64,000 nt of DNA. Source: Rhodosorus marinus CCMP1338 (Eukaryota; Plantae; Rhodophyta). Of this stretch, positions 36,405-54,286 are shown in pieces (position 1 is the first letter of the stretch; every line of letters starts with the position of its first letter). The translations under genes were made by a program, and so were the position numbers. Below the pieces are notes generated by a model. It searched no databases. It worked only from the letters and a program-made list of their open reading frames with translations, and was not told the DNA's origin. Location of the stretch: positions 248,001-312,000 of the forward strand of contig JAMWBK010000007.1 in assembly GCA_029953675.1 (NCBI GenBank), written 5' to 3'.

Positions 36405-38716
36405 CTATGCAGTCATGTATGACGATACGTCAATAGCGTCAGGCAGCTCCGAGATAGCAACTTCAAATCTCGATTGTACGTCGTTCAAGGTAGTTTCGTC
36501 CTCATCGCTTGAAATGAAGGAAATAGCTAGTCCCTTCGTTCCAAACCTGCCAGCTCTCCCCACTCGATGGAGGTACGAGTCTGCGTCTGCTGACATGTCA
36601 TAGTTGATCACAATGTTCACTCGCTCAACGTCAATTCCCCTGCCAAAAATGTCCGTCGCCACAAGAATTCTCTTCTTGAAGTCCTTAAACGCCTTGTAGC
36701 GCGCGATTCGCTCCGCCTGCGGAAGCCTAGCGTGCATGGCGATCGATGGAAAGTTGCACTCCACAAGCAGTTTGTTCAACTGCGTGCATCGGGCAACGTT
36801 CTTCACAAAAATCACGACCTGATTGAACTCCAGCGCATCCAGAAGGTCGTTGAGCTTGCGGTTCTTTTCTGCCTCCTTCAGCTTCAAGAAGTACTGAAGC
36901 AGTCCATGCAGGGTCAGCTTCGTTTCATCGTCAACGTAAACTTCCATTGGGTTTTGCATAAACTTTTTGCAAATTGCTCGGATCTCCTTAGCAAGAGTAG
37001 CTGAAAACATCATCACTTGCTTGTCATGAGGGGTCGTTCGGAAGATATCCTGGCGACAGTGCCGAACAACATAAACGTCAGCACCCTCTTCAAGAGGCTT
37101 CGGAGTGGGCCGCGCGATCCCTTACCTGAACATCTCGGCGCATGTCCGTCATCTCCAACATCTTGTCGCACTCGTCAAGAACGAAGAACTTGATATGCGA
37201 GAGATCCAGAATCTTCTTCTGTGCCAGGTCAAGTACACGTCCGGGAGTCCCGACAATCACATGTGGAGTACTCGTAGCCAACATCTCCTTGTCCTGCTTC
37301 AGCGGGACACCGCCATAGATCACTCCAACTTTCAAGTCCGGCATGTACTTCGAGAAACGCTCGAATTCGCGAGCAATCTGATACGCAAGCTCTCGCGTAT
37401 GTCCAAGGACTATACAGCTAACAGTACCCTCCTTCGGCTCCAGCTGATGCAAGACCGCGAGAGTGAAAACGGCCGTCTTTCCCATTCCAGACTTGGCCTG
37501 ACAAAGGACATCGGTTCCCAACGTTGCCTTGGGAATGCATTCGTGTTGAACCTCCGAGGGGTGTTCAAATCCACAATCCTGTCGGGTCATTCAAACACAC
37601 TACATTCAGATTCGATTTCGACTCAAGGGAGCAGTCGTTGGCCTTAAAGCCGAGTGGCGAACCTGGATTGCTCGAAGGAGCTCAGGTTTCAACAAAAAAT
37701 CCTTAAATCCCGCAGAGTGAAGACCGACATAAGTGCCCCTAACAATCGAAAAATGTAAGCGTAAGATAAGTTCTCCATCAGTTCTCTGTCCGGGCCTCTT
37801 GCAGCATCCGTCAGCGTCTCAAAGAGCAAAATCAAGGCGGCAAAGTCATCTACGGCATCACTGGCGAGTGAATCTGCAACGAGCTCGGGTTTGGGGAGCA
37901 AGGGTTCAGCTTCGGGCGGGTCCTGGACATTCTGAAAAAGAGATAAGAGATATTCCAGCCTTTTAAAGGCTGCCTTCCTAAGGTCCTTCATCAAATCCGG
38001 AACATGTCGTCTCTACGGCCAACGGCAGCAAATACTCCGGGCTTCTTTCGAGCGCGCGCTCTACTAGTGTACCGCCTTCGGGTGTTGGGCAACTCTAGAA
38101 AGGTGATTGCACATGCAGGTTTTCTTTCACGGTACCCGACAAATCAGAACTTTCCTGCGCCTCCGACTACCGATCTAAAAGGTGAGACCAACTCAACTAG
38201 GCTCTACCGCGATGCTGATACGCTCATGCGCACAGCTAACGGTATTGAGCTTCATTCTGACGGGTTTGTCCTTACACGAGTACAAGACAAGGGTGCATGA
38301 AGACAGGATCGTCTCCTTGTTGCTCTTCGAACATATTCATCTACAGAAAGTCATCCCAAAACGATTTAAAGGCGACACGACCAAGCGCTCGACAAACGCT
38401 GACACCACTGGTACTTGCGCAACCCTGCCTCGATACTGCCCTCGCTTTTGTCTCTCAGAAGCCATACCGAACCCCATGGACGTCTTTGCCGGCGGACTTG
38501 ACAATAAATAAATGCAAAAGCACTGGAGAACGCTTTCGGGATGCTGATTTTTGAACTTTTTGGCAGGAGTGCTTAGCCATACTTTGAAGCGGGTTTCCCA
38601 TCAGCGTCCTCTTTCGCAGTCGACTCGGCCGGAACTGTCTCTTCCTCCTCCTCGTAGTCGACGAACTCTTCCTCTCCTCCAAACTCCTCAGCTGGTTTAC
38701 TCGCCTCAACCTCCAT
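36405..38716 (-). CDS. UAP56: DECD-box RNA helicase UAP56/SUB2 (DDX39)
   Basis: Exons 38716-38583, 37738-37663, 37578-37126, 37049-36405. [67 protein letters not shown]. Confidence 0.95.
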
Positions 38717-40454
38717 CGCGGATTCTCTACAGAAAGATACCTCGATCAAATCCGGTCCCGCCCGACCACAAGAACAAAAATACTTGTAAAACTTTGGCAC
38801 AAAAAAAAAAAGAAATCAAACTCTTCCGCTGCCTGAATACTCCCGCTCGCTCTCCAGGAAACGACACAGAAAAACACGAAAACAACAAAAACACGAGAAA
38901 TACGTATATACTACAGACGTAAATCAACAAACGCCTCACGTTCTACAGAATAAAATCCGATCTCCAAAAATACTCACTTTCGTCTTTCCTCCTAAAGGAA
39001 GTCCCACCCCAAACAACTCCTTCCCTTCCAACCTCCCCTCCTTCACCATTACCCCTCCTCATCAACCCAAAATCGCTGCTTAAATACTTCTCCACAAAGA
39101 AGTCATCTGTCAACTTCCGATGAAAGCAAACTCCATCGCCTCCTTGAAACAAACGAAAAAAAAGTAGTTTGGGGGGGGGTAGCGGGGGTGGGTGGGACGG
39201 GGGGGTAATCTTCCTCCTCATCTCATCCTGTATCCAATAATTTTTATAAATAAAAATTTATCAAACATATCGCTAATTTGTAGGGGGTAAAGCCTTCGTA
39301 GCTTTAGTTAAAGTCAAAATCTTATACCCCGCTCAACTTTCAAGTAATTCCTGCGTTTCAATATTTTCATTATTTTTCGTAGAACCCGTATGATGTCGGT
39401 CCACCACCCTTTTATTTATTTTGATAATTTATATATTTCTATTTTTCCATCGGTTTTGAACGGTTTGAGGCGATGGTGACTTTTTAGGATGAGTTTTATT
39501 CGTTTTTCAAATATTGATTTTGTTTTCGCGGTTTTTGGTTGCTTTTGGGCGGGTTCTCGATGTGGATGGATGGATTCTGGAAGTTCTCTCTTACTGAGCG
39601 AGAATGTGTTTGACTGTTACATAGTAAGAGCTGCTGCCTCCTTACCAGCCGCGTGTCCCAGCCATCAACAGTTGGAATAATGCCCCGCTAGGCGCATTTT
39701 TGTCTTTTTGAACGAAACGCAAACCACAACGCATCGATCTTGCATCGGTTTTGGTTTTTGCTTCCTTTCCCATCTGATTTGTAATATATGACTGGAGAGG
39801 ACGAAGCAGCTCTCAAGCTCCTTCACGTAATCGCCCGGATGGCGTACCAGAATACTTTGCTGATGTATATGACTCATGGACTTGGCCAGGAATCAACTTG
39901 CTTCGCGTTTTGCCCAGCGAGGGCCAAAATCCTTTCAGTGAAGTGGAGGTGCGGTAACAAACTTCGGCTAGCCCGCTATTGCCGTGTCGCACGTTCAAAA
40001 GATCGGGTACAATCGAGATTTTGTTCTGATATGCCATGTCCCGGCCTCCCGCTGGACGCCCAGAGAGCACATCTTGCAAAGCCAGTCATGATACAGAACC
40101 TCACTAAACATCTTGAGCTTTCAGGACTGGCAAAGCAGCGTGACGTGAAGACAAGAAGCAAGACTGCGTAGATCACTTAGAAGTCAGTCTTCCAAAGGGA
40201 TTTCGTTCTCGTCGTAGCCGTCGTCTTCCAAAGTTAAGGTGTCAATAAAAAGTTCTAACGCCTCTCGATCTGCTTATGAAAGTGGGATGATGACCGACTG
40301 AAGGGATGAGCAAGCACTTTGCTATGAAAGTAGAAAAGCTCGATGGTCGAAGGATTTGGTTATCAAGCGCGTCGAGAGGGTCTTCTTCGCTGCTGAAGAA
40401 GCGGGCGCTGCTGAGCTTAGCGCTTTAGAGAGTGAGTCTTTTTGTGGGAGAGCG

Positions 40455-41411
40455 ATGTCTGGATCAGCCGCTGCAGGGAACAAGCGGCTAAGGGGAACGG
40501 TTGTGGTCGTTCCAATTGTTCATGGATCGATTTCATTCTACTTGGGAAAGAAAAGCGAAGAGGAACGAACGCACAAGTGGACCGCGTATGTCCGCGGGTT
40601 GGAGAACCGCGATTTGTCCTACGTTGTGAAGAGCGTCGAGTTCCTTCTGCATGAAAGTTTCGATCCGCAAAAGCGAGGTACAGAGACAGAACCACATCTT
40701 TCATGTAAAAATACTGAGCGAAATTTTTGCCCTTTTGTTTCCACTTCCGTTTTACTTCCGCCAGTTCTATCTTTACCTCCGTATGAAGTCACCGAGAGCG
40801 GCTGGGGAGAGTTTGAAGTGAACATCAAAATCCACTTTAAGGACAACATCGAAAAGCCCGTCGAGATCTTTCATTTGTTGAGGGTATGTCTTTTCATTGC
40901 CAAGCATGAAAACGGAAAAGCGACACCTAACTGAGAAGTGGAAGCGACGTCGCCCTCCCGCCCATCCATCTTGCAATAGCTGTTTCCTCCACTAGGCACG
41001 GAAATGTCCAAGAAACCAGTGGTATCTGAGCACTACGATGAGATTATATTTCAGGATCCCACAGAGAACCTCTTCAAGATTCTCAAAGCAGGCCCGTCAG
41101 CGAAGTTCAAGCTAAGCACTTATTCTCCCTATTGTATGAATAGCACAGCATGGTTGGGAGGAAAGGTCTTCCCTTTCTCTCTCAGAAGAGTCGATTCCTG
41201 TGCACTAACCGCTCTTCTCCTCTTAAAATTCCCTGACATAACCCAAGTCTCCAGCTTCGAAGGACAGGAGAGCAAAGAACTGAAACAGATCGAGGAAGCC
41301 AGAAAGAAGCTGAGGCACGACAAACTGGCCCTCGAGGATAAGTTCAACGCCCTTGAAGTGGAAAGGGAAGAGCTTGCACGGGAGCTCACACGATTGGGAG
41401 GCAAAGTGTGA
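40455..41411 (+). CDS. YAF9: YEATS-domain protein (YAF9/GAS41-like) with C-terminal coiled coil
   Basis: THKWTAYVRG, FLLHESF, PPYEVTESGWGEF, SEHYDEIIF. Introns 40678-40764, 40884-40979, 41134-41247. Confidence 0.9.
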
Positions 41412-42247: not shown

Positions 42248-45200
42248 CTAAGGCATATGCTTTTGACGAAGACTTGTCAACACCAGCGTGATATCCTGGA
42301 ACCTGTTGTGGAAACGGTATAGCGATTTAAAACATGCTTCCCGGCTCTCCAAACAGTAGGGTCTTATGAGTCTCCTACCTCGGCCTTCTCTTAGGATCCT
42401 GCTGGAAGCAGCCTTCCATTATCGCCTTCATATCCTCCGGAGCATCAATCCCGTCGGGGAGTCTTAGCCTTTCTCCCCTTGATCCCACCTTGAACACGAC
42501 CTGCATAGGATGATCATCCTTGAAGGGCTTTTGGCAAACCATGAGTTCCCAGAGGATTACACCGAAAGCCCAAACGTCGACTGACTCATCGAAAAGATCC
42601 TGCCGAAGCATTTCTGGTGCCATCCACTCAGGTGTGCCCCCCGGGCCGGTGTCCACATAGCTGCTTTCCTTCAACCGGGATAAACCGAAGTCTGTAACTT
42701 TCACCTAGCAAGAGAAAAAAGTTGCCACTGTTATTCAGGCCTGACTTCCGCAACAGGATGATTTTGCACTTCCACCAACCTCCTCCACGGTTCTGCCAAG
42801 AAGCACGTTCGGCGATTTCAAATCTCTATGTACAATGGTCGGGGATTGCGCGTGCAGGTACTCCATGCCCTTGGAGATGCCATAGGCGATGTAGACCTGT
42901 TTAACTGTTGATAGCGGAGCTCCGTGCGACTTCATCTGTTTATAAAGTACTCTGTACAGGCTTCCTCCGGGCATGAACTAGTGGGTGTAAGGAAAATTAA
43001 CACGATTCTCAGGTCAGGAAACACTACGCGTTCGCATTGGACGCATTCCAGGGCACTCACCTCCAAGAGAATCGCAAGCGTGGGAACGTCTACACAAGCA
43101 CCAATAAATGAGACAACGTTGGGATGCGACAAATCTGACATTAACTTGATCTCTTGCAGGAACTCCTTGACCGGCACGATCATTTTCTCCTCACTGCCTT
43201 TTGGAGTAAGAGTCTTCACGGCTACAATCTTGCCGTCGTGTTTCGCCTTGAAAACCTGTCACCGAAGCCCAATTACTGTTTTCAATGGCTAGAATTGGTG
43301 CATCGAGTTTAGATTATCCTTCAATACCTCTCCAAACCCGCCGGCACCAATTTTGGGGCCGAAGATAACGGATTTGAAGTCCACAGCCCAATGTTTCATC
43401 CACTGGTCATCAAAAATGCCTTTCGCATCGTTCACACCCATCCTCGTCAAATCGGCCTTCTCTTCCTGAATGTCACCGAAGATTAGGTTCCTGTCCTGGT
43501 TCTCCTTCTGCATCATGATCCTGTCCCCAAAGTCTGCAAAAGACAGAGAAAGATGCAATGAGTAAACACGTAGCAGGAAACTGCTGAGGAAGCTTTTGAT
43601 AGTGGCTATGGTCAAAAATCAAATCCAACACTACAGTCCATCCTCTTGGATCGTGATGTCCTTACTGTTCATCTTAGCGACATCAGATCCAGGCTGCGCC
43701 TCCGCGACCGTGGGAGAGTCCTTAAGCCAGTCCTTGATTAAACTCTTTGCCTTCTCGAAATCCTGTTCTCGGCAGTCAACCCCCTGCGTTGCGATCAGTC
43801 TTCTCGCAAGAGGTGTGAGATCGCAGCTCCTCCAGAAGAGCGGAACAATCGTATTTCCTGAAAGAGGTATTTTCCATGTTGGTGGAGAAGGTACGGTCAG
43901 ATTGGCAAAATTCTCGTATTAATCACCCGCGACTGCTCGGTCTACCTTGAGTATCAAAATCCGAACAGTAGGCAAGTGAGAACGCCTCAGTGCACTCCTT
44001 CGACTGAAAGTAGTCATCGGATAGCAGCGATAGAATCATGGCGGATTTCTTGATCGCGTTAATCGTGGGTACGCTGACAATTCCTCGCTCGCGCATTTTT
44101 AGGCCCCTAAGAAAAATGTCGCGAAGAATTTCGTTAGGATCTGCTCCTGATCGCAGGTGGTACACGATGACGGCAGGATTGCTGACTCACTTTGGCGCCC
44201 CATCAAAAATTTCGATCCCCGGTCTGGTCTCCTTCATAAAGTACATCAAAGCCTCTGCATCTGCAGCATCCTCCTGTGCGTAGCTCACGTACACGTCGTA
44301 CTTCTTTTTGGATGGAAGGTCTTGCTTCACAAGCGACTCTTTCAACTGAGGCCAGTGGTCATCAATTTGAACTAGTCAGCATTTGGCATCGCTCGAACGA
44401 GCGATTCTTGTTAGCGCCAGCGACTGTCTCACCTTTCTGAAAGTTTCGAGGTCCTTGGAGACGTCAGTATCATACGGAAGGAGGATTCGAATCTTCCGAA
44501 TCGGCAAGCCCATCATCATCCATGCGTACGTGATCTCGACCGCCGCCCGGACGAAATGTTTCCTAAGCGAATGGCTCAATAGGCCCCCCATTAGCGGAAG
44601 CATAACAGAGTTGATCTCCACTTCCCCACCGATGACAGTAGCTAAACATTGCATTATATCCTATTGGAATGGCGGAGAGAAGCCCAAGCATTAGCCAACG
44701 CGACTTATCTAGAGGGAGGGCGAAAACGTCGGGGACACAATTACCAACGCGATATTGTCATCGCTTTCCAGTTCCTTTCCTGGATCCTCATAGACAAGAA
44801 GCCTGTCATATTCAAACCCATCCGGACGTGGTTTGGGTAGTGATTTTGATAGCCAGCAATGATAGTGACGCCTATAGCTCGGGTTTGGATTCGTCTGTTT
44901 TTCAAGCTGTACCAAACTGATTCCGCTCCGGTTCAACGCTGCCAAAGCAGAGTCGCGGTTGGCCTTATGATCCCCTCGGGCCCTCAAGTAGACTACAAGT
45001 AGATCAGTTGCGTCGGTCTTCGAGAGCGACTCCACCTTCCCCTGCATCAACTCGATTCTACTGGTGAAGTGCTTCGTATGAACATTAATAAAATCCACCG
45101 TAGCCGCACGGCCCGTATCTTTCGGTCCATAGACAGGTACTGGCTTAGGCACAACCCTCTTTTCCGGTGCTGATTGGTTTCCATGCTTGCCATCACGGGC

Positions 45201-45355
45201 ATCACCAGCTGTTGCCCTCCCTCCTAAATACAAATCAATCACAGTGTCAAACCAGCGCACTTCTATTTCCAAATAAAAAAAGGATCAAGACGAACGTTTG
45301 AGGATCACAACCTACCCCGAGCTCCCCCAGATCCCAAACCATGAGAGTTCCCCAT
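42248..45355 (-). CDS. Macro-like domain + TIR domain + TKL/Raf-like protein kinase fusion (744 aa, 11 exons)
   Basis: Exons 45355-45316, 45223-44745, 44660-44433, 44345-44191, 44106-43946, 43857-43666, 43533-43328, 43255-43061, 42977-42780, 42704-42379, 42302-42248. All introns GT-AG (72-132 nt), phases consistent, total 2235 nt. TIR: YDVYVSYAQED, LSDDYFQSKEC, IVPLFW, DCRE. Kinase: GAGGFG, VAVK, HRDLKSPN, DFG, APE. Confidence 0.88.
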
Positions 45356-48095
45356 CTAAGACGGTGGACGCTCTCAGGCCGACAAACGGCAACCTAACTC
45401 AACCTCAAGAAAGCACAAGCCCCTGCAACCCCTCTCCACCCCCTCCACCCCCCTCCCCCAACAAGCAGCACAAACGCACTCACCCACAAAAACAAAACTA
45501 GCAGAACAAACCGACGCCCGTAAAAGTAAACAGATCAAACCAACAACACCGCATCGTATACTCAACCCTGAATCGGCTACAAACTCTCCACCCCCACCCA
45601 AACAAAACCTCAAAAAACGCAATTCTCGTCCTTAAATCGTAACGAAGAAGAAAGAAAAGAAGAAGAGCGTCTCTCCACTCCAACCCTCTTCCATCTCTCC
45701 CCTCCCACCCCTCCCTCCACAACCCCACCCAACCCCACCCTACCCCACCCCTACCAACCCAACCCTACCACCAAACCCTTCTCCCTGAAACCTTTTCAAC
45801 CCTCAATCATTTGTTATTTAAACGATAGAATTTATCCGACGCGTGTCCGATAAAATTTTCCTCGGTGTCATATATAGACTACTGGAATAAATGTAGAAAA
45901 ATAACCGTACTCCGATTAAAATTCTTCTAAAACCCATGTCCGATTGCTCGTCCGATGAGGCGGTCCGATAAAATTCCTACAATTCAATCAGCGGTCTTCT
46001 AATGATCCATGATCTCCGGCCCAAGTATTGAATCATGATTACTTCTAGACCAGCCAGGCTGTCACTCCTATCTATTGAATGTTGAATACTTCTGAAATAG
46101 ACAAGCTGTCATATCTATTTTTTCTTATGTGTTTTTAGAATATTCAGATCCGAAACAGTGGAAGATTGAATATCAATCAATGTTCTGTGTTGATTGATGA
46201 ATACGGACGTCAATCCAGCGATATTGGACAGGCTTTATTTTTTTTTGCAGCTAACACAGGTTATGCGTATGGTAAGAGATGCACATCCCAATTATTACGA
46301 AATTCATGTCTGATTAATATATATCGGCCTGTCCGATAAATTCGGCTTTTTGGGGGTGGATATGACAAAACTCTATAAATACCCATTTCTCCAGGTTTTG
46401 ATTTTTTTTTTTCCTTTTCTTTTTCTTTTCCGAATCCGAAAAGGAAACCTCCAAAACAAACCAAAACCGATAAATATTGAGCGAAGGTTAGTGGTTTTCT
46501 TCCAATTTTCATATGTCCAGCAAAATTACGGCCTGGGCAATCAAGAGAAGCTTCTGCACTCCCCCTCCCGGCCTAAACAAAGAAGCAATACCGTCGCAGG
46601 AAAAAGACTATTTTATATTCCAGTAATATTGTACCAAAATGAACAAAGAAAAAATGATGTTTTCGCGGATCGACCAACGGCTAAACGTTCAAACCCCTTA
46701 TGAGTTTCGCGGAAAAGGAACTCCCTTAATACCTTTACCATCGAAAGTGTTGATAAAAAACGCACATTCCAATTGGAGACTTTGATAGAGATATCAATCA
46801 TTTCTTGCCGGGGGCCAAAAACATTTCTATTGAACATTACAACGAGAAGGACTCAGTCACTGTTTGCGATAATGATTGCTTTTACACATCTCCATAGTCC
46901 ATGTCATCTAGGGCTTCGTAACCTATCGGGATTGGTTCAGTTTCCTCATTCACTCCCCCACCTGGTACAATCCGTATTGACTGTAGATGTTTTTTTCCGG
47001 GAATAAAAAGTACTTGATTTCTTTTTTCGTTTGTAGACAGATATTCATTGACATGAGAGCTGAGATGGGGGGGAGGGGGGGGAAGGGAATAATTACATTC
47101 GTTGGGAATCCATGAAATCTCCGCATTCTGATCCATGCCTTAAAGGATCTCAGAATCATCCTATTATGGAGCTGCCCTGAAGAAACATCCTTAATCCTAC
47201 CCCCCTAATCTTTCCTAGTTGGGTCCTTAAAACATACGGGACAAGAGGATCCCGCGTTACGACAGGCTGTCTATTGCTCAATAGTGAGGGGCGCCCAGTT
47301 AGTTCGTTGGGACATTTTGGCTCGGTACTACTATTCCTTCCGAGAGTAGATAGTACTTGATTTCTTTGTAGACAGATATTCTTTGCCTGATGACTTGCGC
47401 TATGCCAGTTCACGCGTCTATAGGAGATCAGTCGGACTTGGATGTTCATTTTCATCGCGGATAAGTTCAGGCTTGAGAAGCGCTCACCCCATTGCAATTT
47501 TTGGCTCTCGAATACTGGAACTGTGAAGACCTCAACGACGCAAGGAACTGTACGAGACACCCCTCGCGCGCGGCTACCACACTGCTCCGGACACGCACCA
47601 CAAGGACGATAGAGGATCTGGTCCTTAATTGTTTGCGTGGATTCAGCCAGGAACGCTATTCACGCCCAAGAACTGTCCTAAAGCCACGGAATCGAGCTGA
47701 CGGTCGGATGTCGGGTCTTACCTGTCAAGAGCAACCTGTTCCCTGTCCCTGTACCTTGTTGGCAACCGCTCTGTGTAGCAATTCGAAGGCTACGTTTAGC
47801 CACCTGTGAAGAGCTGCGCAGACGATTGACCAACACAGAGAAACACCAAGCCAATCGGATTCATCTGGTTCGCGGCCATAGCATCCACGAAACTGACGGC
47901 CTTGAAAAACAAAACCATGCAACCCTTCGCGCTAAGGCGGCTGTCACCGCATTCGGAAGAAGCGCGTAGGACCAGCATAAAAGGCGACCGCTATGCTTTA
48001 GTATTACATCTGACATCGATGCTTCTTTTCTCGGAATCAATTCGGAGACGACTCAATTCTACTTTCGCCTGAGTTGATACGGCTATAGCCTGGAC

Positions 48096-49871
48096 TTAGG
48101 CAGTGTACGTGGTGGCATGGACGTTGCCACCGGTCCCAGTCCAGTTGGTATGGAAGTACTCTCCTGCTGGCTTGTCGACTCTCTCGTAGGTGTGTGCACC
48201 GAAGTAGTCGCGTTGGGCTTGAAGCAGACTGGCGGGCAGGGTCTCCGCTCGATATCCATCAAAGAATGATAGCGCAGAAGTGAACGCTGGAACGGGGACT
48301 CCATGCTTTACAGCCAGTCCAACAGTTGAGCGCCATCCGCTCTGTGCATTTTCAATCGCATCCTATCGCGGTCATGAAAAACATTAGCATCGTCAGTACT
48401 CTTCAACAATCCCAAAAGATTATCGCTTGAAGGTCCTACCTTGAAGAATTTGTCCAGCAGAAGGTTGGTCAGCTTGGGGTTTGCCTTGAACGCGTTTCTA
48501 ATGTCACCTAGGAACTTGGAGCGGATGATGCATCCTCCCCTCCACATGAGCGCGATTCCACCGTAGTTAAGGTTCCAGTCGAACTCCTTGGCGGCCTCAC
48601 GGAGCAACATGTAGCCTTGAGCATAGGATATGATCTTGGAAGCGTACAGGGCATCCTCGATTGCCTTCGGAAATGGATAAACGGGATTTAGAACCTGCCT
48701 TCAAATAGAGGGTTTCATGGTGAAGACCATGATCGCACCTTCAGCAAGCCAGCATCAGCCTTCTCCACGGGAACGTCAGGTCCAGACAGATACTTGGACG
48801 CTTCAACACGCTCAGCCTTCATCGAAGACAGAGCGCGGGCGAATACAGCCTCTCCAATCAGCGTCACGGGTGTACCTGATAGAGAGGTCCAAAGCCGGTT
48901 GTCGCAGTCAGCTTTCAGGCTAAAAGAGGCACCAAGCCGCTGCGATTTGGGGCTTACCGAACTCCAGCGCAGATTGAGCAGTCCATTTTCCAGTGCCTTT
49001 CTGGCCTGCTTTGTCCATGATCTTTGTGACGAGCGTATCACCGTCCTCCTTGTAGGCGAGGATGTTGGCGGTGATTTCAATGAGGTAGGAATCCAAAACA
49101 CCCTTGTTCCACTCCTTGAACTGTTCTGCGCATTCGTCGTTGGACATTCCGAGAACGTTGGTCATCAGGCTGTATGCCTCGCAGATGAGCTGCATATCTC
49201 CGTACTCAATGCCGTTGTGAACCTAGGTCGAGATCAACAAAAAAGAACGCATGGGTGTGAACGGAACAGACGACGAGAGATAGGAGATGAACGTGTGCCG
49301 CACAGGAACTCACCATCTTGACGTAGTGGCCAGCTCCGTTCTCACCAACCCACTCACAGCAAGGCTCGCCGTCGCTCTTCGCAGAGACCGCCTGGAAAAT
49401 TTCCTGGATGGCAGGCCAGGCAGCTGTAGAGCCACCAGGCATCAGTGATGGGCCATACCTTGCGCCTTCCTCACCACCAGAAACGCCGGATCCAACGAAC
49501 AGGAATCCCTTCTCCTCAACATACTTCGTCCTTCGGATCGAGTCTGGGTAATGAGAGTTTCCGCCATCAATGATGATATCACCAGCTTCCAGATGCGGGA
49601 AGAGCAGTTCCATGAAGTCATCAACTGCCTTTCCAGCCTTCACGAGCAACATCACCCTCCTCGGCCTCTTCAACTTAGAGCACAGATCAGCGATTGACTC
49701 CGATCCTACCACATTCGTCCCCTTCGCCTCGTTCTCCAAAAAGGCGCTGACCTTGGACACCGTCCTGTTGAAAACGACCACCGTAAACCCGTGATCGTTC
49801 ATGTTCAGAACCAAGTTCTGACCCATCACCGCCAGTCCAATCAAACCGAAATCACCAACAGGCTCCGCCAT
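48096..49871 (-). CDS. gnd: 6-phosphogluconate dehydrogenase, decarboxylating (cytosolic, host-type)
   Basis: [97 protein letters not shown]; several introns; TAA 48096-48098. Confidence 0.95.
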
Positions 49872-52321
49872 CTCGTCTTTCAAGCAGCAACAAGAAAAAA
49901 AGTAAACGAAAACCTCCGAAAATTCAAAATTTATAACACTGCCGTCCCTCTCCTCACATTCTCACTGCGCATACAGATCCTCCTCTCTCTTCACCTAAAA
50001 CGCTTTGTATGCTTCCCGTCCGCCTCTCTCTGTCTTTCTCTCTCCTCTCCTCCCAATTGACAATCACAATCCGGAGTTTTCACATCCAACCCTACCGTAC
50101 CGTTGATCAATCAATATTACAAAACAGTATATTGAAATATACTTCATTTTTATCTACAGCTGTCCTACAGTTGATTGAGGAGGTTTTTTCTTTCAATATT
50201 GCTTCTGCGCACACCTACCCCTCTAACCGCGTAAAAAGCACACGTACAATCCATCGCTGTCTCCAAATCAGGGAAGAGAGGGGGTAATACTTGGCGTCCC
50301 ATGAAAATGTATTTTTATATATAGGGGTTAACTAACTAACCAGAACTCTATTTAAGTTTTGGGAATTTTTATGGGCTTCTCATATTGTGTTCGTCTATAT
50401 AGAGGGGTTCAGTGTTGCCTGACATAGCTCCATGTCTGTTGTGTTTTTAGGGGGGTTGAACTATGGTTTTGATATTGTAATTTGGCTTTTGTGAGGTTTC
50501 TGGAGGAGGGGGTTGGCTCGTCTCTGTTTTTTCGGATCTGTTACAACTTTGAAAGAATTTCGATTTTTCAGCGTTTTCATGTCCAGTACAGAGATTTTCT
50601 TCTCGATTTCCGCCGTGCAGGTAATTTACGATACAGGGACAATATTTACAAGTACAAGTACTAGATATTTTGAGTAAAACTAACTCTATATCTGTTTTAT
50701 GTCCTCACTGTAGTAAAAAAATGGATACGCCAATATCTTTTTCGACAGCGTTCCCACGATCGCGAGAGCGTCCTAAAGTTTTGGAAATATTGGAAAATAT
50801 CCTTTGGCGCACAAGGATGGGATCCGACGTGAATGGTATTTCGCCGGTCCGAAATTGCTATGATTCGGATTTGAAAGACTATGTCAACGGATTTCCGGCG
50901 GCCGGTGGTAAAAGTACAGCATTCCGACGGACGCCTGGTGTTGAAGAGGAAGGGTTTGAATCCGGAGCGAACAAAGTCCGGCCCCAAGATACCTCACAAC
51001 TGTTGAAATGCGAAGATAACTTCTGTAACTGCCTCAATCCGCGTAACCCCCCATGTTTTCTTAGATCTCGATCCCCATGGGTAGAGGGACGCTAGCACGT
51101 CCCGGCCCAGGCGCAACCTGCTCGAACAAGTTTCCTTCGCCTCAGTGAGGGTTTTACCGTGAAACTAACAACCCCGGGTGGTTTTTTTTTTGTTTTTCGC
51201 GTGTTTGGATCGGCTCTTCCTCTCTCTCTTCCCACTCGCTTTTTTTCGTCTTCTGTGGATAGTGACTGTTTGTGATCAGAGACCACATCCCTGTGAGGGA
51301 GGAAACTGAAACTTGGTCTGGCAGGTTGCGCCTACCCATGGATCGAGATCAGCCGATAACCAGACCCGCGCATATCCGTGTTTTGTCCATATTGAGTGAA
51401 AAGGAGCTGGGGCTGTTCACGGCAGGTTCCAACTGTACTGTACTATGCACAAGGAACGTGTCTGTTCTTGAAAGAAGTTCAGGCTCATGGATTCTGCAGC
51501 CTTGTCGTCAGTGGACAACCACCGCCGTGTCGCCTAAATCCTGACCTTGCGTCTCTCGATCTTCTTACCGATAAACCCGGGAGCTTAGGCCTCAGTTACC
51601 ACCCAGGCATCTCACCTCGAGCACGTAAAACCATCCGGCCTCCACCAAAACCTCCTCCAACCCCCCTCTTCCTTTCCAAGGTTGAGCACATTTCACCTCA
51701 TCCGCCAATCTCAACATTCATTGGCTTCATCATACTCAATTTTTAACTTAAAAAGGGGCTAAATCCACATCCAACCAACCATTACCCGAAAAACTCACAA
51801 ACGCGATCTACCGTATCCAATCAATACGTGTTTCTCCAAAACCATTGTCCAATCCATATCCTCCAAATTCCGATTTCTAATGCACGTGGTTTTTTGATAA
51901 TAGGGTTCAATCAATACAAAAATCAACTCTGACGATAAGTGGCTATAAAATGATTGATGATATTTTTAATTGGATAAAGCATGTATAATGATTTGTAGGA
52001 GATATTTACTGTCTTTTAGATGTTTTTAAGAAGAAACTTTTGAGGCAGCGTGGAGGAGGGGCGTTTTCGTCAAATGGGGATACTGGAAACTGCTCCGGTG
52101 CTTTGCAGGACGAGATAAGAAGAGCAGTGGAAGTTTCGTTCAGGGGTTGGGCAGGGTGAGGGAGGAGGGGAGGAGGAGTGGTAGAAGTTGAAGATTTGCT
52201 AAGAAGAAGCTTGTAAAAACAGGGCAGGGGAGTTAAAGGGTGAGGGGGAGATTTTTTCTGGGATTTTTTTTTTTGCCGAATCTTCTGGCCTTCTTGTCTT
52301 ACGGGTGAGGCGTTTTGAAGG

Positions 52322-54286
52322 ATGGATTTGAGTGGTAAGGGGGCACCTTTAACTCGGCATGGGTCGAATCCTGACTTGACAGTGATTGACGATGAGAACG
52401 CTCGGGTGAAGGAGTTTAAGGATCCGACCACGATCGTCGTGGTTGGGGCGTCTGGTGATCTCGCGCACAAGAAGACGTTCCCGGCTCTGTTCTCGCTGTA
52501 CTATCATGGCTTGCTCCCCCAGAGGTTTCATATTGTCGGGTACGCGAGGAAAGCACTGGACTTGGAAGGCTGGAGATCGAATATTCTACTCAATCTGGCG
52601 TGCAGAGTGCTCGATCAGAAGGACTGCGCCACAAAGATGGAGGAGTTTATCGAGAGACTGTCTTACATGTCTGGCCAGTACGACAGTGCGGAGGACTTTG
52701 CTAAACTCGATGCCTACCTCGAAGATCTCGAGGATAGGCAACCGACTGGAAGACTTTTCTACCTAGCGATTCCCCCGAACGTAGGCATTGACTGTCAGTC
52801 GATCTTTGCTGTATCCTCATAGGCAAGGCCTGACTGAGATGCTCCTCTGGTGGCATCTCGTACACAGGTTTTCGGTTCGGCAATGGGCAGCATCAAAGCC
52901 TCGGCAGTCGCAAAGAATGCATGGACCAGAGTCGTTGTCGAAAAGCCCTTCGGACGCGATACTGAGTCGTACATGGAGTTGCGCGATCAATGCGCAGCGC
53001 ACTTTCAGGAAGAGCAACTCTATCGAATCGATCACTACGTCGGGAAGGTACGGAACAGGCCGAGGAAAACCAACATCGTTCTTGGTGACAGAATAGCGTT
53101 GGCTTGTTGCTGAGGTACTCATTCCTTTGTCCCCTCTGTGGATCCAACTTACCAGGAAGTGGTCCAGAATATGGTTGTGCTGCGGTTTGCTAACTTTATA
53201 TTCGAGCAACTGTGGTGTAAGGAGAATATAAGGGATATGCACATTATCTTCGAAGAAAACTTCGGAACAGAGGGGCGAGCTGGGTACTTTGACCAGTTTG
53301 GAATTATCCGCGACATCATGCAGAATCATCTGTTGCAAGTGCTTGCCTACCTCACTATGGAGCGTCCAAAGTCGCTCCACGCTGCGGATATCAATCGGGT
53401 ACGGACCGCACTGGGAGAAGTCGACGAATTTTCAAACTAAACATCGCCTGCCCGAACTTACCTAGCGTGTTGCCCGTGAACGAACAGGTCAAGACGAAGC
53501 TTCTCTCAGAGATTATGCCTCTCAAAGCGAAGGACTTTGTAGTGGGTCAGTACGAAGGGTACCGAGAGGAAGATGGAGTACCGGAGGGCTCGGTCACTCC
53601 AACATTTGCTGCTTGCGTTATGTACATCAACAACCAACAGTGGGAGGGAGTCCCTTTCTTCCTTACCGCGGGAAAGAACCTTCACAACCGCAAGGCTGAG
53701 GTCCGTGTCCGCTTCAAGAAGGGCCACAGTATGGACTTTTTCCCCGGTGAAGAGGTAGGTCTGCAGTACACCACTAAGATGTGCTTCAGTATGATTCTAA
53801 GGGTTGTCTTGTGGGGTCTTGAAAAACAGGTCGGCAATGAAATCATCATTCGCATCCAACCGGATGAAGCTGTAAGCCTCCGCGTCGTGAATAAGGTTCC
53901 TGGCTTGGCGAAGGATCTGGCATATACGAGCCTGGATCTCCTGTACAAGGATGCGTTCGAGAAGGAGAGCAAGGACATTGCCGATGCGTACGAGAGGCTT
54001 ATTTTGGACGCGATCCATGGAGAAAAATCCCTCTTCGTTCACGACGAGCAGCTCAGAATCTCGTGGGAGCTGTTCACGCCTGCCCTGAAAGAGCTAGAAT
54101 CCGAAGATAGCCCGGTAAGAGCATTGCGTGCGAAATTTTTGAGTAGAAAAGAGTCTGATTTGGCCATGTCACTAACCCCGATATGTTCCGGTTTAGGTCA
54201 AACCTGTTTTATATACGCCTGGTACGAAGGGACCACCTGAAGCCGATGATCTTCGGCATATTCACAGGGCTATGGTTGAGCCCTAG
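52322..54286 (+). CDS. G6PD: Glucose-6-phosphate dehydrogenase (cytosolic)
   Basis: [70 protein letters not shown]; multiple introns; last exon VKPVLYTPG...VEP*. Confidence 0.95.

Follow-up and report, generated by a model that had tools for sequence, protein, structure and literature searches.

TIR domains are a link among the immune systems of bacteria, plants, and animals, in which they serve either as signal generators that cleave nicotinamide adenine dinucleotide (NAD) or as scaffolds for kinases. Helix C of TIR NADases must begin with a catalytic Glu, found within the WCLDEL motif of plants and the xC.[DE]EF motif of bacteria, and the NAD-bound crystal of RUN1 was obtained with the inactive E100A variant. 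In macrodomains, the Asp of the GD[IL]T motif contacts adenine, as seen in Af1521 and macroH2A1.1. Type II Thoeris combines the two domains: the macro domain of ThsA is the receptor of the TIR-made signal, His-ADP-ribose (His-ADPR). Here we describe a gene of the red alga Rhodosorus marinus CCMP1338 (GenBank assembly GCA_029953675.1, contig JAMWBK010000007.1) that joins a macro-like domain, a TIR domain, and a Raf-like kinase domain in a single protein. It lies on the minus strand of a 64,000-nucleotide (nt) stretch, positions 248,001 to 312,000 of the contig, which is referred to below as the window and to which all coordinates apply. The reading developed here, whose chances we put at about even, is that of a core Raf-like mitogen-activated protein kinase kinase kinase (MAP3K) controlled by a nonenzymatic macro-TIR assembly and regulatory module.

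In the six-frame translation, the gene appears as ten long open segments on the minus strand, with the frame switching at short gaps. For each such gap, all GT..AG pairs that leave the frame open were listed, and at every junction one pair was clearly the best; the donors of these pairs resemble GT[AG]AG, and their acceptors are rich in pyrimidines. Six-frame translation and splice-pair enumeration together yield a gene at 42248..45355 (ATG at 45355, TAG at 42250-42248) with 11 exons and a 744-amino-acid (aa) product starting with MGNSHG. The ten introns are all of the GT-AG type, measure 92, 84, 87, 84, 88, 132, 72, 83, 75, and 76 nt, keep the phase, and leave zero stop codons. The best database match, an open reading frame (ORF) from an R. 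marinus MMETSP transcript (P0001, 557 aa), is 97% identical to this protein and matches junctions 1 to 7 residue for residue. Past exon 8, it reads into intron 8 (42978-43060; LAILLEVSVPAFV) and stops there, representing either a partially spliced or truncated transcript or retention of intron 8; retention, if genuine, could yield a macro-TIR isoform that lacks the kinase. Junctions 8, 9, and 10 are backed by the full-length orthologues, which read LAIILEFMPGGSLY, NVREVK[IV]TDFGLSR, and RRP[RQ]F, respectively. The original prediction, which had been made from the letters and an ORF list, joined 11 exons in consistent phase into a 744-aa protein; that model was reproduced exactly, and all peptide strings quoted there are present in it. 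Its central claim of a single gene with the domain order macro-like, TIR, and Raf-like kinase agrees with the P0001 ORF, the Pfam matches, and the AlphaFold2 (AF2) and Foldseek results described below.

The acceptor of intron 1 is a tandem NAGNAG (TTTAG/GAG/G) that offers the AG at 45224, giving 744 aa, or the AG at 45221, giving 743 aa; P0001 (GGARGRA..) fits the downstream AG better. Two further alternatives were rejected, a 114-nt version of intron 6 (43634/43521), given the KMNNFGDRIMM of P0001, and an 84-nt version of intron 9 (42788/42705), given the NV.EVK[IV]TDFG of the orthologues. A tblastn search with P0001 and an orthologue found only one copy of the gene within the window.

The macro-TIR and kinase parts could belong to two adjacent genes, or the locus could be a pseudogene, but the probability of such an artefact is negligible. 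The single same-species transcript does stop inside the kinase after entering intron 8, and several database models of orthologues (P0004, P0010, P0014, P0017, and P0018) are truncated. However, P0001 runs as one ORF through the macro-like domain, the TIR domain, and the N-lobe of the kinase, the ten canonical introns are in phase and free of stops, the kinase motifs are intact, and complete three-domain transcript or gene models exist in Agarophyton, Chondrus, and other red algae. Among these, the complete transcript ORF of Agarophyton chilense (P0025) carries all three domains in one frame, with HRD, DFG, and APE present. We regard the artefact view as effectively refuted and the gene model and the macro-TIR-kinase fusion as confirmed, with support from transcripts.

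The central domain is a TIR domain both by Pfam, where TIR_2 scores 31.9 bits against a gathering cutoff of 28, and by fold, with Foldseek matches to the TIR domains of RUN1 (E 5.6e-6) and Hydra TRR-2. A phmmer search of aa 1-463 against the PDB sequences gave marginal TIR matches (E 0.4-2), which were not counted as domain evidence; in it, Ala342 of the query is aligned to the residue that is mutated in the E100A crystal form of RUN1. In the alignment with the bacterial relatives, Ala342 falls on the Glu of their SKVC.[DE]EF motif. This position, that of the catalytic Glu, is Ala in 17 of 17 red-algal orthologues, within an invariant ECTEAF, whereas Glu is found in 79 of the 89 non-red relatives in which the motif was located (the count was made with a regular expression that missed about a third of the sequences). 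A Galdieria protein (P0027) and a distant kinase fusion (P0030) have Leu instead and also lack the neighboring Glu. With Ala342 in ECTEAF, the domain falls outside the class of TIR NADases, which comprises SARM1, plant TIRs, Thoeris ThsB, and AbTir and is marked by the Glu of the W/x-C-x-x-E motif. The region as a whole is very strongly conserved in red algae (ECTEAFSLAYCRDF.SQGNFIIPLFWRSCDLTPLARRLVATEGVDCRE).

Such conservation, together with an acidic residue that the invariant ECTEAF keeps next to the canonical position, would suit a TIR domain that still consumes NAD or makes a signal through a noncanonical residue, e.g., Glu341, with the macro-like domain binding or processing the product and the kinase regulated in cis. 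We consider this highly improbable, as the canonical Glu (C+3 in xC..EF), required in the known TIR NADases, is kept by most of the non-red relatives and lost from every red-algal orthologue, and P0027 and P0030 have lost the adjoining acidic residue as well. The original prediction had cited both oligomerizing scaffolds and NADases as known roles of TIR domains; the scaffold option fits these data, and the NADase option does not.

The N-terminal domain (aa ~50-260) has no Pfam match even at E<=10 and none in NCBIfam or PADLOC, which places it outside the Macro family (PF01661) and its relatives at the level of sequence profiles. It was therefore identified by structure prediction and profile-profile comparison. 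The AF2 model, built on 17 red-algal sequences, has a predicted local distance difference test (pLDDT) score of 85 and a predicted template modeling (pTM) score of 0.85. Its informative top Foldseek matches in PDB are all macrodomains (E 2e-7 to 1e-5, probability 1.0, target TM score 0.6-0.73), including macroH2A1/2, Af1521, YmdB, the macrodomains of PARP9/14/15, and Oceanobacillus MacroD; the entries labeled “SPX” are macro-carrier fusions. A second AF2 model, covering the macro-like and TIR domains, retrieves the same macrodomains plus the TIR domains of RUN1 and Hydra TRR-2. By AF2 and Foldseek, the domain thus has the macrodomain fold, a three-layer α/β/α arrangement with a mixed central sheet.

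A sequence link to macrodomains runs through a bacterial family. The red-algal and bacterial profiles match over 197 columns (hhalign probability 99.9, E 9e-37), and the bacterial profile matches solved macrodomains, namely, PARP14 (2.8e-4) and Af1521 (1e-3), as well as YmdB and MacroD2 (E 3e-4 to 0.03 overall). In these alignments, ieLllGDLt of the bacterial profile is paired with lkLaqGDIT of Af1521 and svAmPllatGdqg is paired with SIAFPAVSAGIYG. One bacterial member has a weak YmdB-type match (E 0.038); otherwise, the bacterial relatives of the N-terminal domain gave no family in Pfam, NCBIfam, or PADLOC. The modeled fold supports the assignment of this domain as a divergent macrodomain, with the sequence link being a transitive one through the bacterial family. 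The macro domain had been called by eye in the original prediction, and both the predicted structure, in which the macro and TIR folds were recovered, and the transitive profile link bear that call out.

The residues that bind ADP-ribose in other macrodomains have not been retained; the statements on the pocket rest on alignments and on the secondary structure positions of the AF2 model. The position of the adenine-contacting Asp is unconstrained in red algae, being S, K, A, P, or H (QG[S/K/A/P/H]VE), and the bacterial and animal relatives have GD[LIV][TSA]. Loop 2 generally reads PLSGALLSP in red algae and PLMGGLLSH in Rhodosorus, compared with PAVSAGIYG in Af1521 and PllatGdqg in bacteria; the two glycines of its G-x-x-G are replaced in register by Leu and Pro (or His). 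Loop 1 is YLR.RG.YKANRDS in red algae, and the glycine-rich N-x6-GG[VLI] is found in no member of the macro-like family. The red-algal domain accordingly carries neither the GD[IVL]T Asp nor the glycine-rich loops 1 and 2 of the ADP-ribose-binding motifs. The loops that line the pocket, YKANRDS, SYRRHYHCWLS, and PLSGALLSP.LRKH, are invariant within red algae and basic, being rich in Arg, Lys, His, and Tyr.

These pocket residues bear directly on the possibility that the macro-like domain senses ADP-ribose, or an ADPR derivative made in trans by a TIR domain or another NADase, whereupon the TIR domain oligomerizes and the kinase fires, as in a single-chain immune sensor of the Thoeris II or Myddosome kind. 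The macrodomain fold obtained with AF2 and Foldseek, the reception of TIR-made His-ADPR by the macro domains of type II Thoeris, and invariant basic loops that would suit an anionic nucleotide ligand are all consistent with it. So are the bacterial sister proteins, in which the macro-like domain is paired with an apparently active TIR domain, and the presence of other TIR proteins in red algae, such as a TIR-NBARC-WD40 protein in Chondrus. In Pyropia yezoensis, one of two genes listed as “TIR+Pkinase” is mildly induced, by 1.5- to 1.6-fold, during infection with the oomycete Pythium (PMC6928737). However, the GD[IL]T Asp has given way to unconstrained residues, Leu and Pro (or His) stand in register with the loop 2 glycines, loop 1 lacks a run of glycines, and the Pfam Macro model is silent; in addition, presence throughout Rhodophyta and high conservation are atypical of immune receptors. 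On balance, we find such a sensor rather unlikely. The original prediction had reasoned from the binding of ADP-ribose by macrodomains to an ADPR sensor, a step that the loss of the Asp and of the in-register glycines, with a loop 1 that is not glycine-rich, does not sustain. A version in which the pocket binds an NAD-derived or other nucleotide messenger made in trans, making the protein a messenger-gated MAP3K, is less probable still, and we mention it as an outside chance.

The C-terminal domain matches Pfam PF07714 (E 2.4e-61) and has a complete set of kinase motifs, GAGGFG, VAVK (aa 498-501), HRDLKSPN, DFG, and APE (Table 1). Its best PDB match is Arabidopsis CTR1 (3ppz; E 1.6e-64), followed by an entry labeled EGFR (9p9u; E 8e-60) and then by MLK1, DLK, and TAK1. 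No N-terminal regulatory domain of the EDR1/CTR1 type was detected by Pfam across the 744-aa protein. Judging from the closest similarity and the motifs, it is right to class this domain as a catalytically complete Raf-like kinase of the tyrosine kinase-like (TKL) group and the CTR1/EDR1 type, in keeping with the TKL kinase of the original prediction. It is connected to the TIR domain by a poorly conserved linker of ~80 aa. Within the linker (aa 393-470; 43379-43744), red algae share two short conserved motifs, [IL]A[DE]KLLM.K and, just before the kinase, VS.MFFD..W; these could be regulatory or docking elements. At the other end of the protein, the start with Gly2 matches the PROSITE N-myristoylation pattern, which, as a pattern match, hints at membrane proximity.

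Mean pairwise identity among eight full-length red-algal orthologues is 0.77 for the macro-like domain, 0.74 for the kinase, and 0.72 for the TIR domain; the linker (0.38) and the N-terminal tail (0.17) are much less conserved. The macro-like domain is under constraint at least equal to that of the kinase, and the protein as a whole is under strong purifying selection.

The same domain order is found across Rhodophyta, in Cyanidioschyzon, Galdieria, Porphyra, and Chondrus; relatives in bacteria and invertebrates lack the kinase. The distant red-algal fusions are represented by Galdieria sulphuraria EME26951 and Cyanidioschyzon merolae BAM79110 (“Raf-related MAP kinase kinase kinase, theta-type”). 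As the fusion spans Cyanidiophyceae to Florideophyceae, it probably dates back to the ancestor of red algae. When the profile of the red-algal N-terminal domain was searched exhaustively, 239 proteins were retrieved at E<=1e-3. Most of the other matches are bacterial proteins of 340-400 aa with the macro-like domain at the N terminus followed directly by TIR_2, encoded by single stand-alone genes in Actinomycetota, Alpha-, Beta-, Gamma-, and Deltaproteobacteria, Cyanobacteria, Acidobacteriota, Bacteroidota, Chloroflexota, and Gemmatimonadota. A 6-sequence subset of the alignment located 27 bacterial loci, spread over about 10 phylum-level groups. An all-versus-all BLASTP comparison of the ORFs from these 27 loci revealed no partner or effector gene that is conserved in the neighborhood of the macro-TIR gene, which thus looks like a self-contained single-gene unit; its translated neighbors are unrelated housekeeping-type proteins (some GC-rich ORFs in these loci were overextended, e.g., in L014).

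In the marine invertebrates Lingula, Pecten, Tubulanus, and Antedon (P0073, P0061, P0065, and P0040, respectively), the macro-like domain is followed by two or three TIR domains. The catalytic Glu is kept in Antedon (SPVCREEF) and lost in Pecten (...CLEQF), and the automatic UniProt name of the Lingula protein is “ADP-ribosyl cyclase/cyclic ADP-ribose hydrolase.” A different arrangement is seen in an uncultured gammaproteobacterial metagenome-assembled genome (CAWBUE010000002.1; L020:1320-5984), where an uninterrupted 1,554-aa ORF contains, in this order, a TIR-like domain, FHA, the type VI secretion system (T6SS) protein VipA, the VipB sheath (E 3e-111), a macro-like domain, and TIR_2, possibly through an artefact of ORF calling. 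In a 952-aa protein whose source name is ImpC (P0102), a sheath-like part likewise precedes a macro-like domain. The fusion of contractile-sheath subunits to a macro-TIR module would be unusual.

The joint alignment of the red-algal and bacterial proteins is collinear over both domains, including the TIR motifs xC..xF and LP..M....DCRE. This relates the red-algal module specifically to the bacterial and animal family, as opposed to an independent juxtaposition, and, with the occurrence of stand-alone macro-TIR proteins in bacteria and invertebrates, it shows the pairing of the macro-like and TIR domains to be an older module than the red-algal kinase fusion. Since the bacterial and invertebrate relatives retain, by and large, the catalytic Glu, GD[IL]T, and the loop 2 G-x-x-G, their TIR domains are probably active as NADases, with the macro-type domain as a regulator. 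All three have been lost from the red-algal clade: the catalytic Glu, the GD[IL]T Asp, and the loop 2 glycines.

The protein can be regarded as a soluble 744-aa signaling kinase encoded by a nuclear gene and possibly N-myristoylated. In the reading that we put forward, a macro-TIR module, acquired or inherited by an ancestor of red algae, would have been joined to a kinase of the MAP3K type. It would then have ceased to process NAD and become the regulatory and assembly domain of the kinase. Self-association of the TIR domains might bring the kinase domains together, leading to trans-autophosphorylation and downstream signaling of the MAPK type, and the macro-like domain, whose pocket loops are reshaped, basic, and invariant, may gate the kinase by binding some ligand or partner through them. 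Several points weigh against this reading. Self-association, kinase activation, and the substrates are drawn by analogy with the TLR/MyD88 scaffolds and with Raf/CTR1 dimerization. Invariant Glu341, directly before Ala342, could conceivably substitute in catalysis, and an invariant Gly two positions earlier in loop 2 would, on sequence alone, permit a re-registered phosphate-binding loop. The two-domain AF2 model has moderate interdomain confidence (pTM 0.67). The ancestry is read from alignments, which give neither the direction nor the timing of transfer among bacteria, animals, and red algae, and the Pyropia TIR+Pkinase gene is at most a putative orthologue of the Rhodosorus fusion. As to biological role, the pan-rhodophyte spread, the single copy in the window, and strong purifying selection suggest a core node of stress or defense signaling, not a fast-evolving pathogen receptor. 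Support for the immune label of the original prediction comes from ancestry and from the 1.5-fold induction in Pyropia, and that label fits the spread and selection less well than a core signaling kinase does.

The gene appears to preserve a transition from the enzymatic mode of TIR action, seen in bacteria and some invertebrates, to a kinase scaffold mode, in a fusion on which constraint has stayed strong in Cyanidiophyceae and in the mesophilic classes, the two major branches of red algae. The gene offers a tractable case of a TIR scaffold that would switch on a kinase without adaptors, and it brings to light an unnamed macrodomain family, without a Pfam, NCBIfam, or PADLOC model, that accompanies TIR domains in bacteria, animals, and algae. 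It is also a candidate entry into the almost unknown signaling and immunity of red algae, including the farmed Pyropia/Neopyropia, in which a TIR+Pkinase gene responds to red rot. If the pocket does bind a nucleotide messenger, Thoeris-like signaling logic would extend to a eukaryotic kinase cascade. Among the effectors of TIR/Thoeris-type nucleotide signaling, such a messenger-gated MAP3K would be the first eukaryotic kinase; it would have been conserved from the ancestor of red algae onward and would derive from a widespread, hitherto unnamed, defense-like family of bacterial macro-TIR proteins.

The window is ordinary red-algal nuclear DNA. The features of the gene and its neighbors are listed in Table 1. 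The 6-phosphogluconate and glucose-6-phosphate dehydrogenase genes, which encode both NADPH-producing enzymes of the oxidative pentose-phosphate pathway, lie within ~5 kb of each other. Directly upstream of the ATG of the fusion gene, at 45400-45790, there is a long, strongly strand-biased low-complexity tract whose plus strand is C/A-rich (CCCCACCC, CCCTCC, and AACCC repeats); it could be a compositional feature of the promoter or of the 5′ untranslated region.

Table 1. Exons and domains of the macro-TIR-kinase gene and neighboring genes in the window
Feature	Position	Strand	Content
Exon 1	45316..45355	-	aa 1-13, MGNSHGLGSGGAR; donor GTAGGT; same N terminus in P0001
Exon 2	44745..45223	-	aa 14-173; low-complexity N-terminal tail and initial two-thirds of macro-like domain
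Exon 3	44433..44660	-	aa 174-249; final third of macro-like domain; loop 2 PLMGGLLS at 44574-44597
Exon 4	44191..44345	-	aa 250-301; start of TIR domain (YDVYVSY, IEIFD)
Exon 5	43946..44106	-	aa 301-354; TIR strand C and helix C, ECTEAF; codon of Ala342, at catalytic-Glu position, 43983-43985
Exon 6	43666..43857	-	aa 355-418; end of TIR domain (IVPLFW, LTPLARRL, VDCRE) and start of linker
Exon 7	43328..43533	-	aa 419-487; poorly conserved linker and kinase start, Gly loop GAGGFG (481-486)
Exon 8	43061..43255	-	aa 488-552; kinase N-lobe, VAVK; codon of Lys501, 43214-43216
Exon 9	42780..42977	-	aa 553-618; catalytic loop HRDLKSPN (602-609)
Exon 10	42379..42704	-	aa 619-727; DFG (623-625), activation loop, APE (647-649), C-lobe
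Exon 11	42248..42302	-	aa 727-744; kinase subdomain XI tail (RPRFQDI...) and TAG; orthologues RRPQFPEL, SRPRFSQL
Macro-like domain	44343..45107, introns 2 and 3 included	-	aa 53-250
TIR domain	43745..44306, introns 4 and 5 included	-	aa 263-392; Pfam TIR_2 at 267-391
Raf-like (CTR1/EDR1-type, TKL) kinase domain	42287..43363, introns 7-10 included	-	aa 476-732
DEAD-box helicase	36405-37590	-	DEAD and Helicase_C, two exon-sized ORFs; housekeeping context, split by short introns like the kinase gene
YEATS-domain gene	40356-41411	+	Housekeeping context, split by short introns like the kinase gene
6-Phosphogluconate dehydrogenase	49206-49883	-	NAD_binding_2, E 2e-47
Glucose-6-phosphate dehydrogenase	52322-54240	+	G6PD_N and G6PD_C

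The architecture appears to be uncharacterized, as had been supposed: its single mention in the literature searched is the “TIR+Pkinase” entry of the Pyropia transcriptome table. That literature contains no description of the macro-like domain or of the bacterial and animal macro-like-TIR family and no functional work on the red-algal fusion. A search for “TIR-kinase” found nothing, and the literature on macro and TIR fusions consists of work on Thoeris II and surveys from the Aravind group, with no description of this fused family. In the databases, the orthologues are named “serine/threonine protein kinase,” “EDR1,” or “Raf-related MAP3K theta-type.”

Among the described systems, type II Thoeris shares with the red-algal protein the combination of a TIR domain with a macrodomain. 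However, it consists of two genes, encoding an active TIR protein, ThsB, and a pore effector with a macro domain and a transmembrane segment, ThsA, whereas the red-algal fusion is one chain with no transmembrane segment, a TIR domain without the Glu, a macro-like domain without the Asp and Gly residues, and a kinase as the output. It therefore lies outside Thoeris type II, which is defined by a two-gene operon of an active TIR and a Macro-transmembrane protein, and the ThsA and macro models of PADLOC had no match even in the bacterial macro-TIR relatives tested. The Myddosome of the TLR/MyD88-IRAK pathway also has a nonenzymatic TIR scaffold upstream of a kinase of the TKL group. The red-algal SDDYFQSKEC resembles SDDYLQSKEC, a motif of the MyD88 TIR domain, and MyD88 TIR domains are among the weak PDB sequence matches of aa 1-463. 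However, the red-algal kinase is Raf/CTR1-like and not IRAK/Pelle-like, the TIR and kinase domains are covalently fused, and the TIR domain is specifically related to the bacterial macro-TIR proteins and not to MyD88. With no Pfam match to a death domain in the 744-aa protein, it does not qualify as a Myddosome component.

The fold of the N-terminal domain is that of macroH2A, Af1521, YmdB, and MacroD, with sequence identity of only 8-16%; it differs from them in the absence of N-x6-GG[VLI], common to the whole macro-like family, and of the Asp and loop 2 Gly residues, specific to the red-algal clade. The bacterial and invertebrate macro-TIR proteins, such as Gordonia bronchialis WP_267618160.1, Lingula XP_013419885.1, and Pecten XP_033734725.1, are collinear with the red-algal proteins over both domains and share with them CWLS, L[CV][FY]E, GLP..[LI]KI, xC..xF, and LP..M...DCRE, but they have no kinase and keep the catalytic Glu (79/89), GD[IL]T, and the loop 2 G-x-x-G. 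At the output end, the closest systems are the plant group B Raf-like MAP3Ks CTR1 and EDR1, which have the kinase signatures HRDLKSPN, DFGLSRLK, and GTPEWMAPE in common with the red-algal protein. These kinases carry their own EDR1/CTR1 N-terminal domain, whereas the regulatory region of the red-algal protein is formed by the macro-like and TIR domains.

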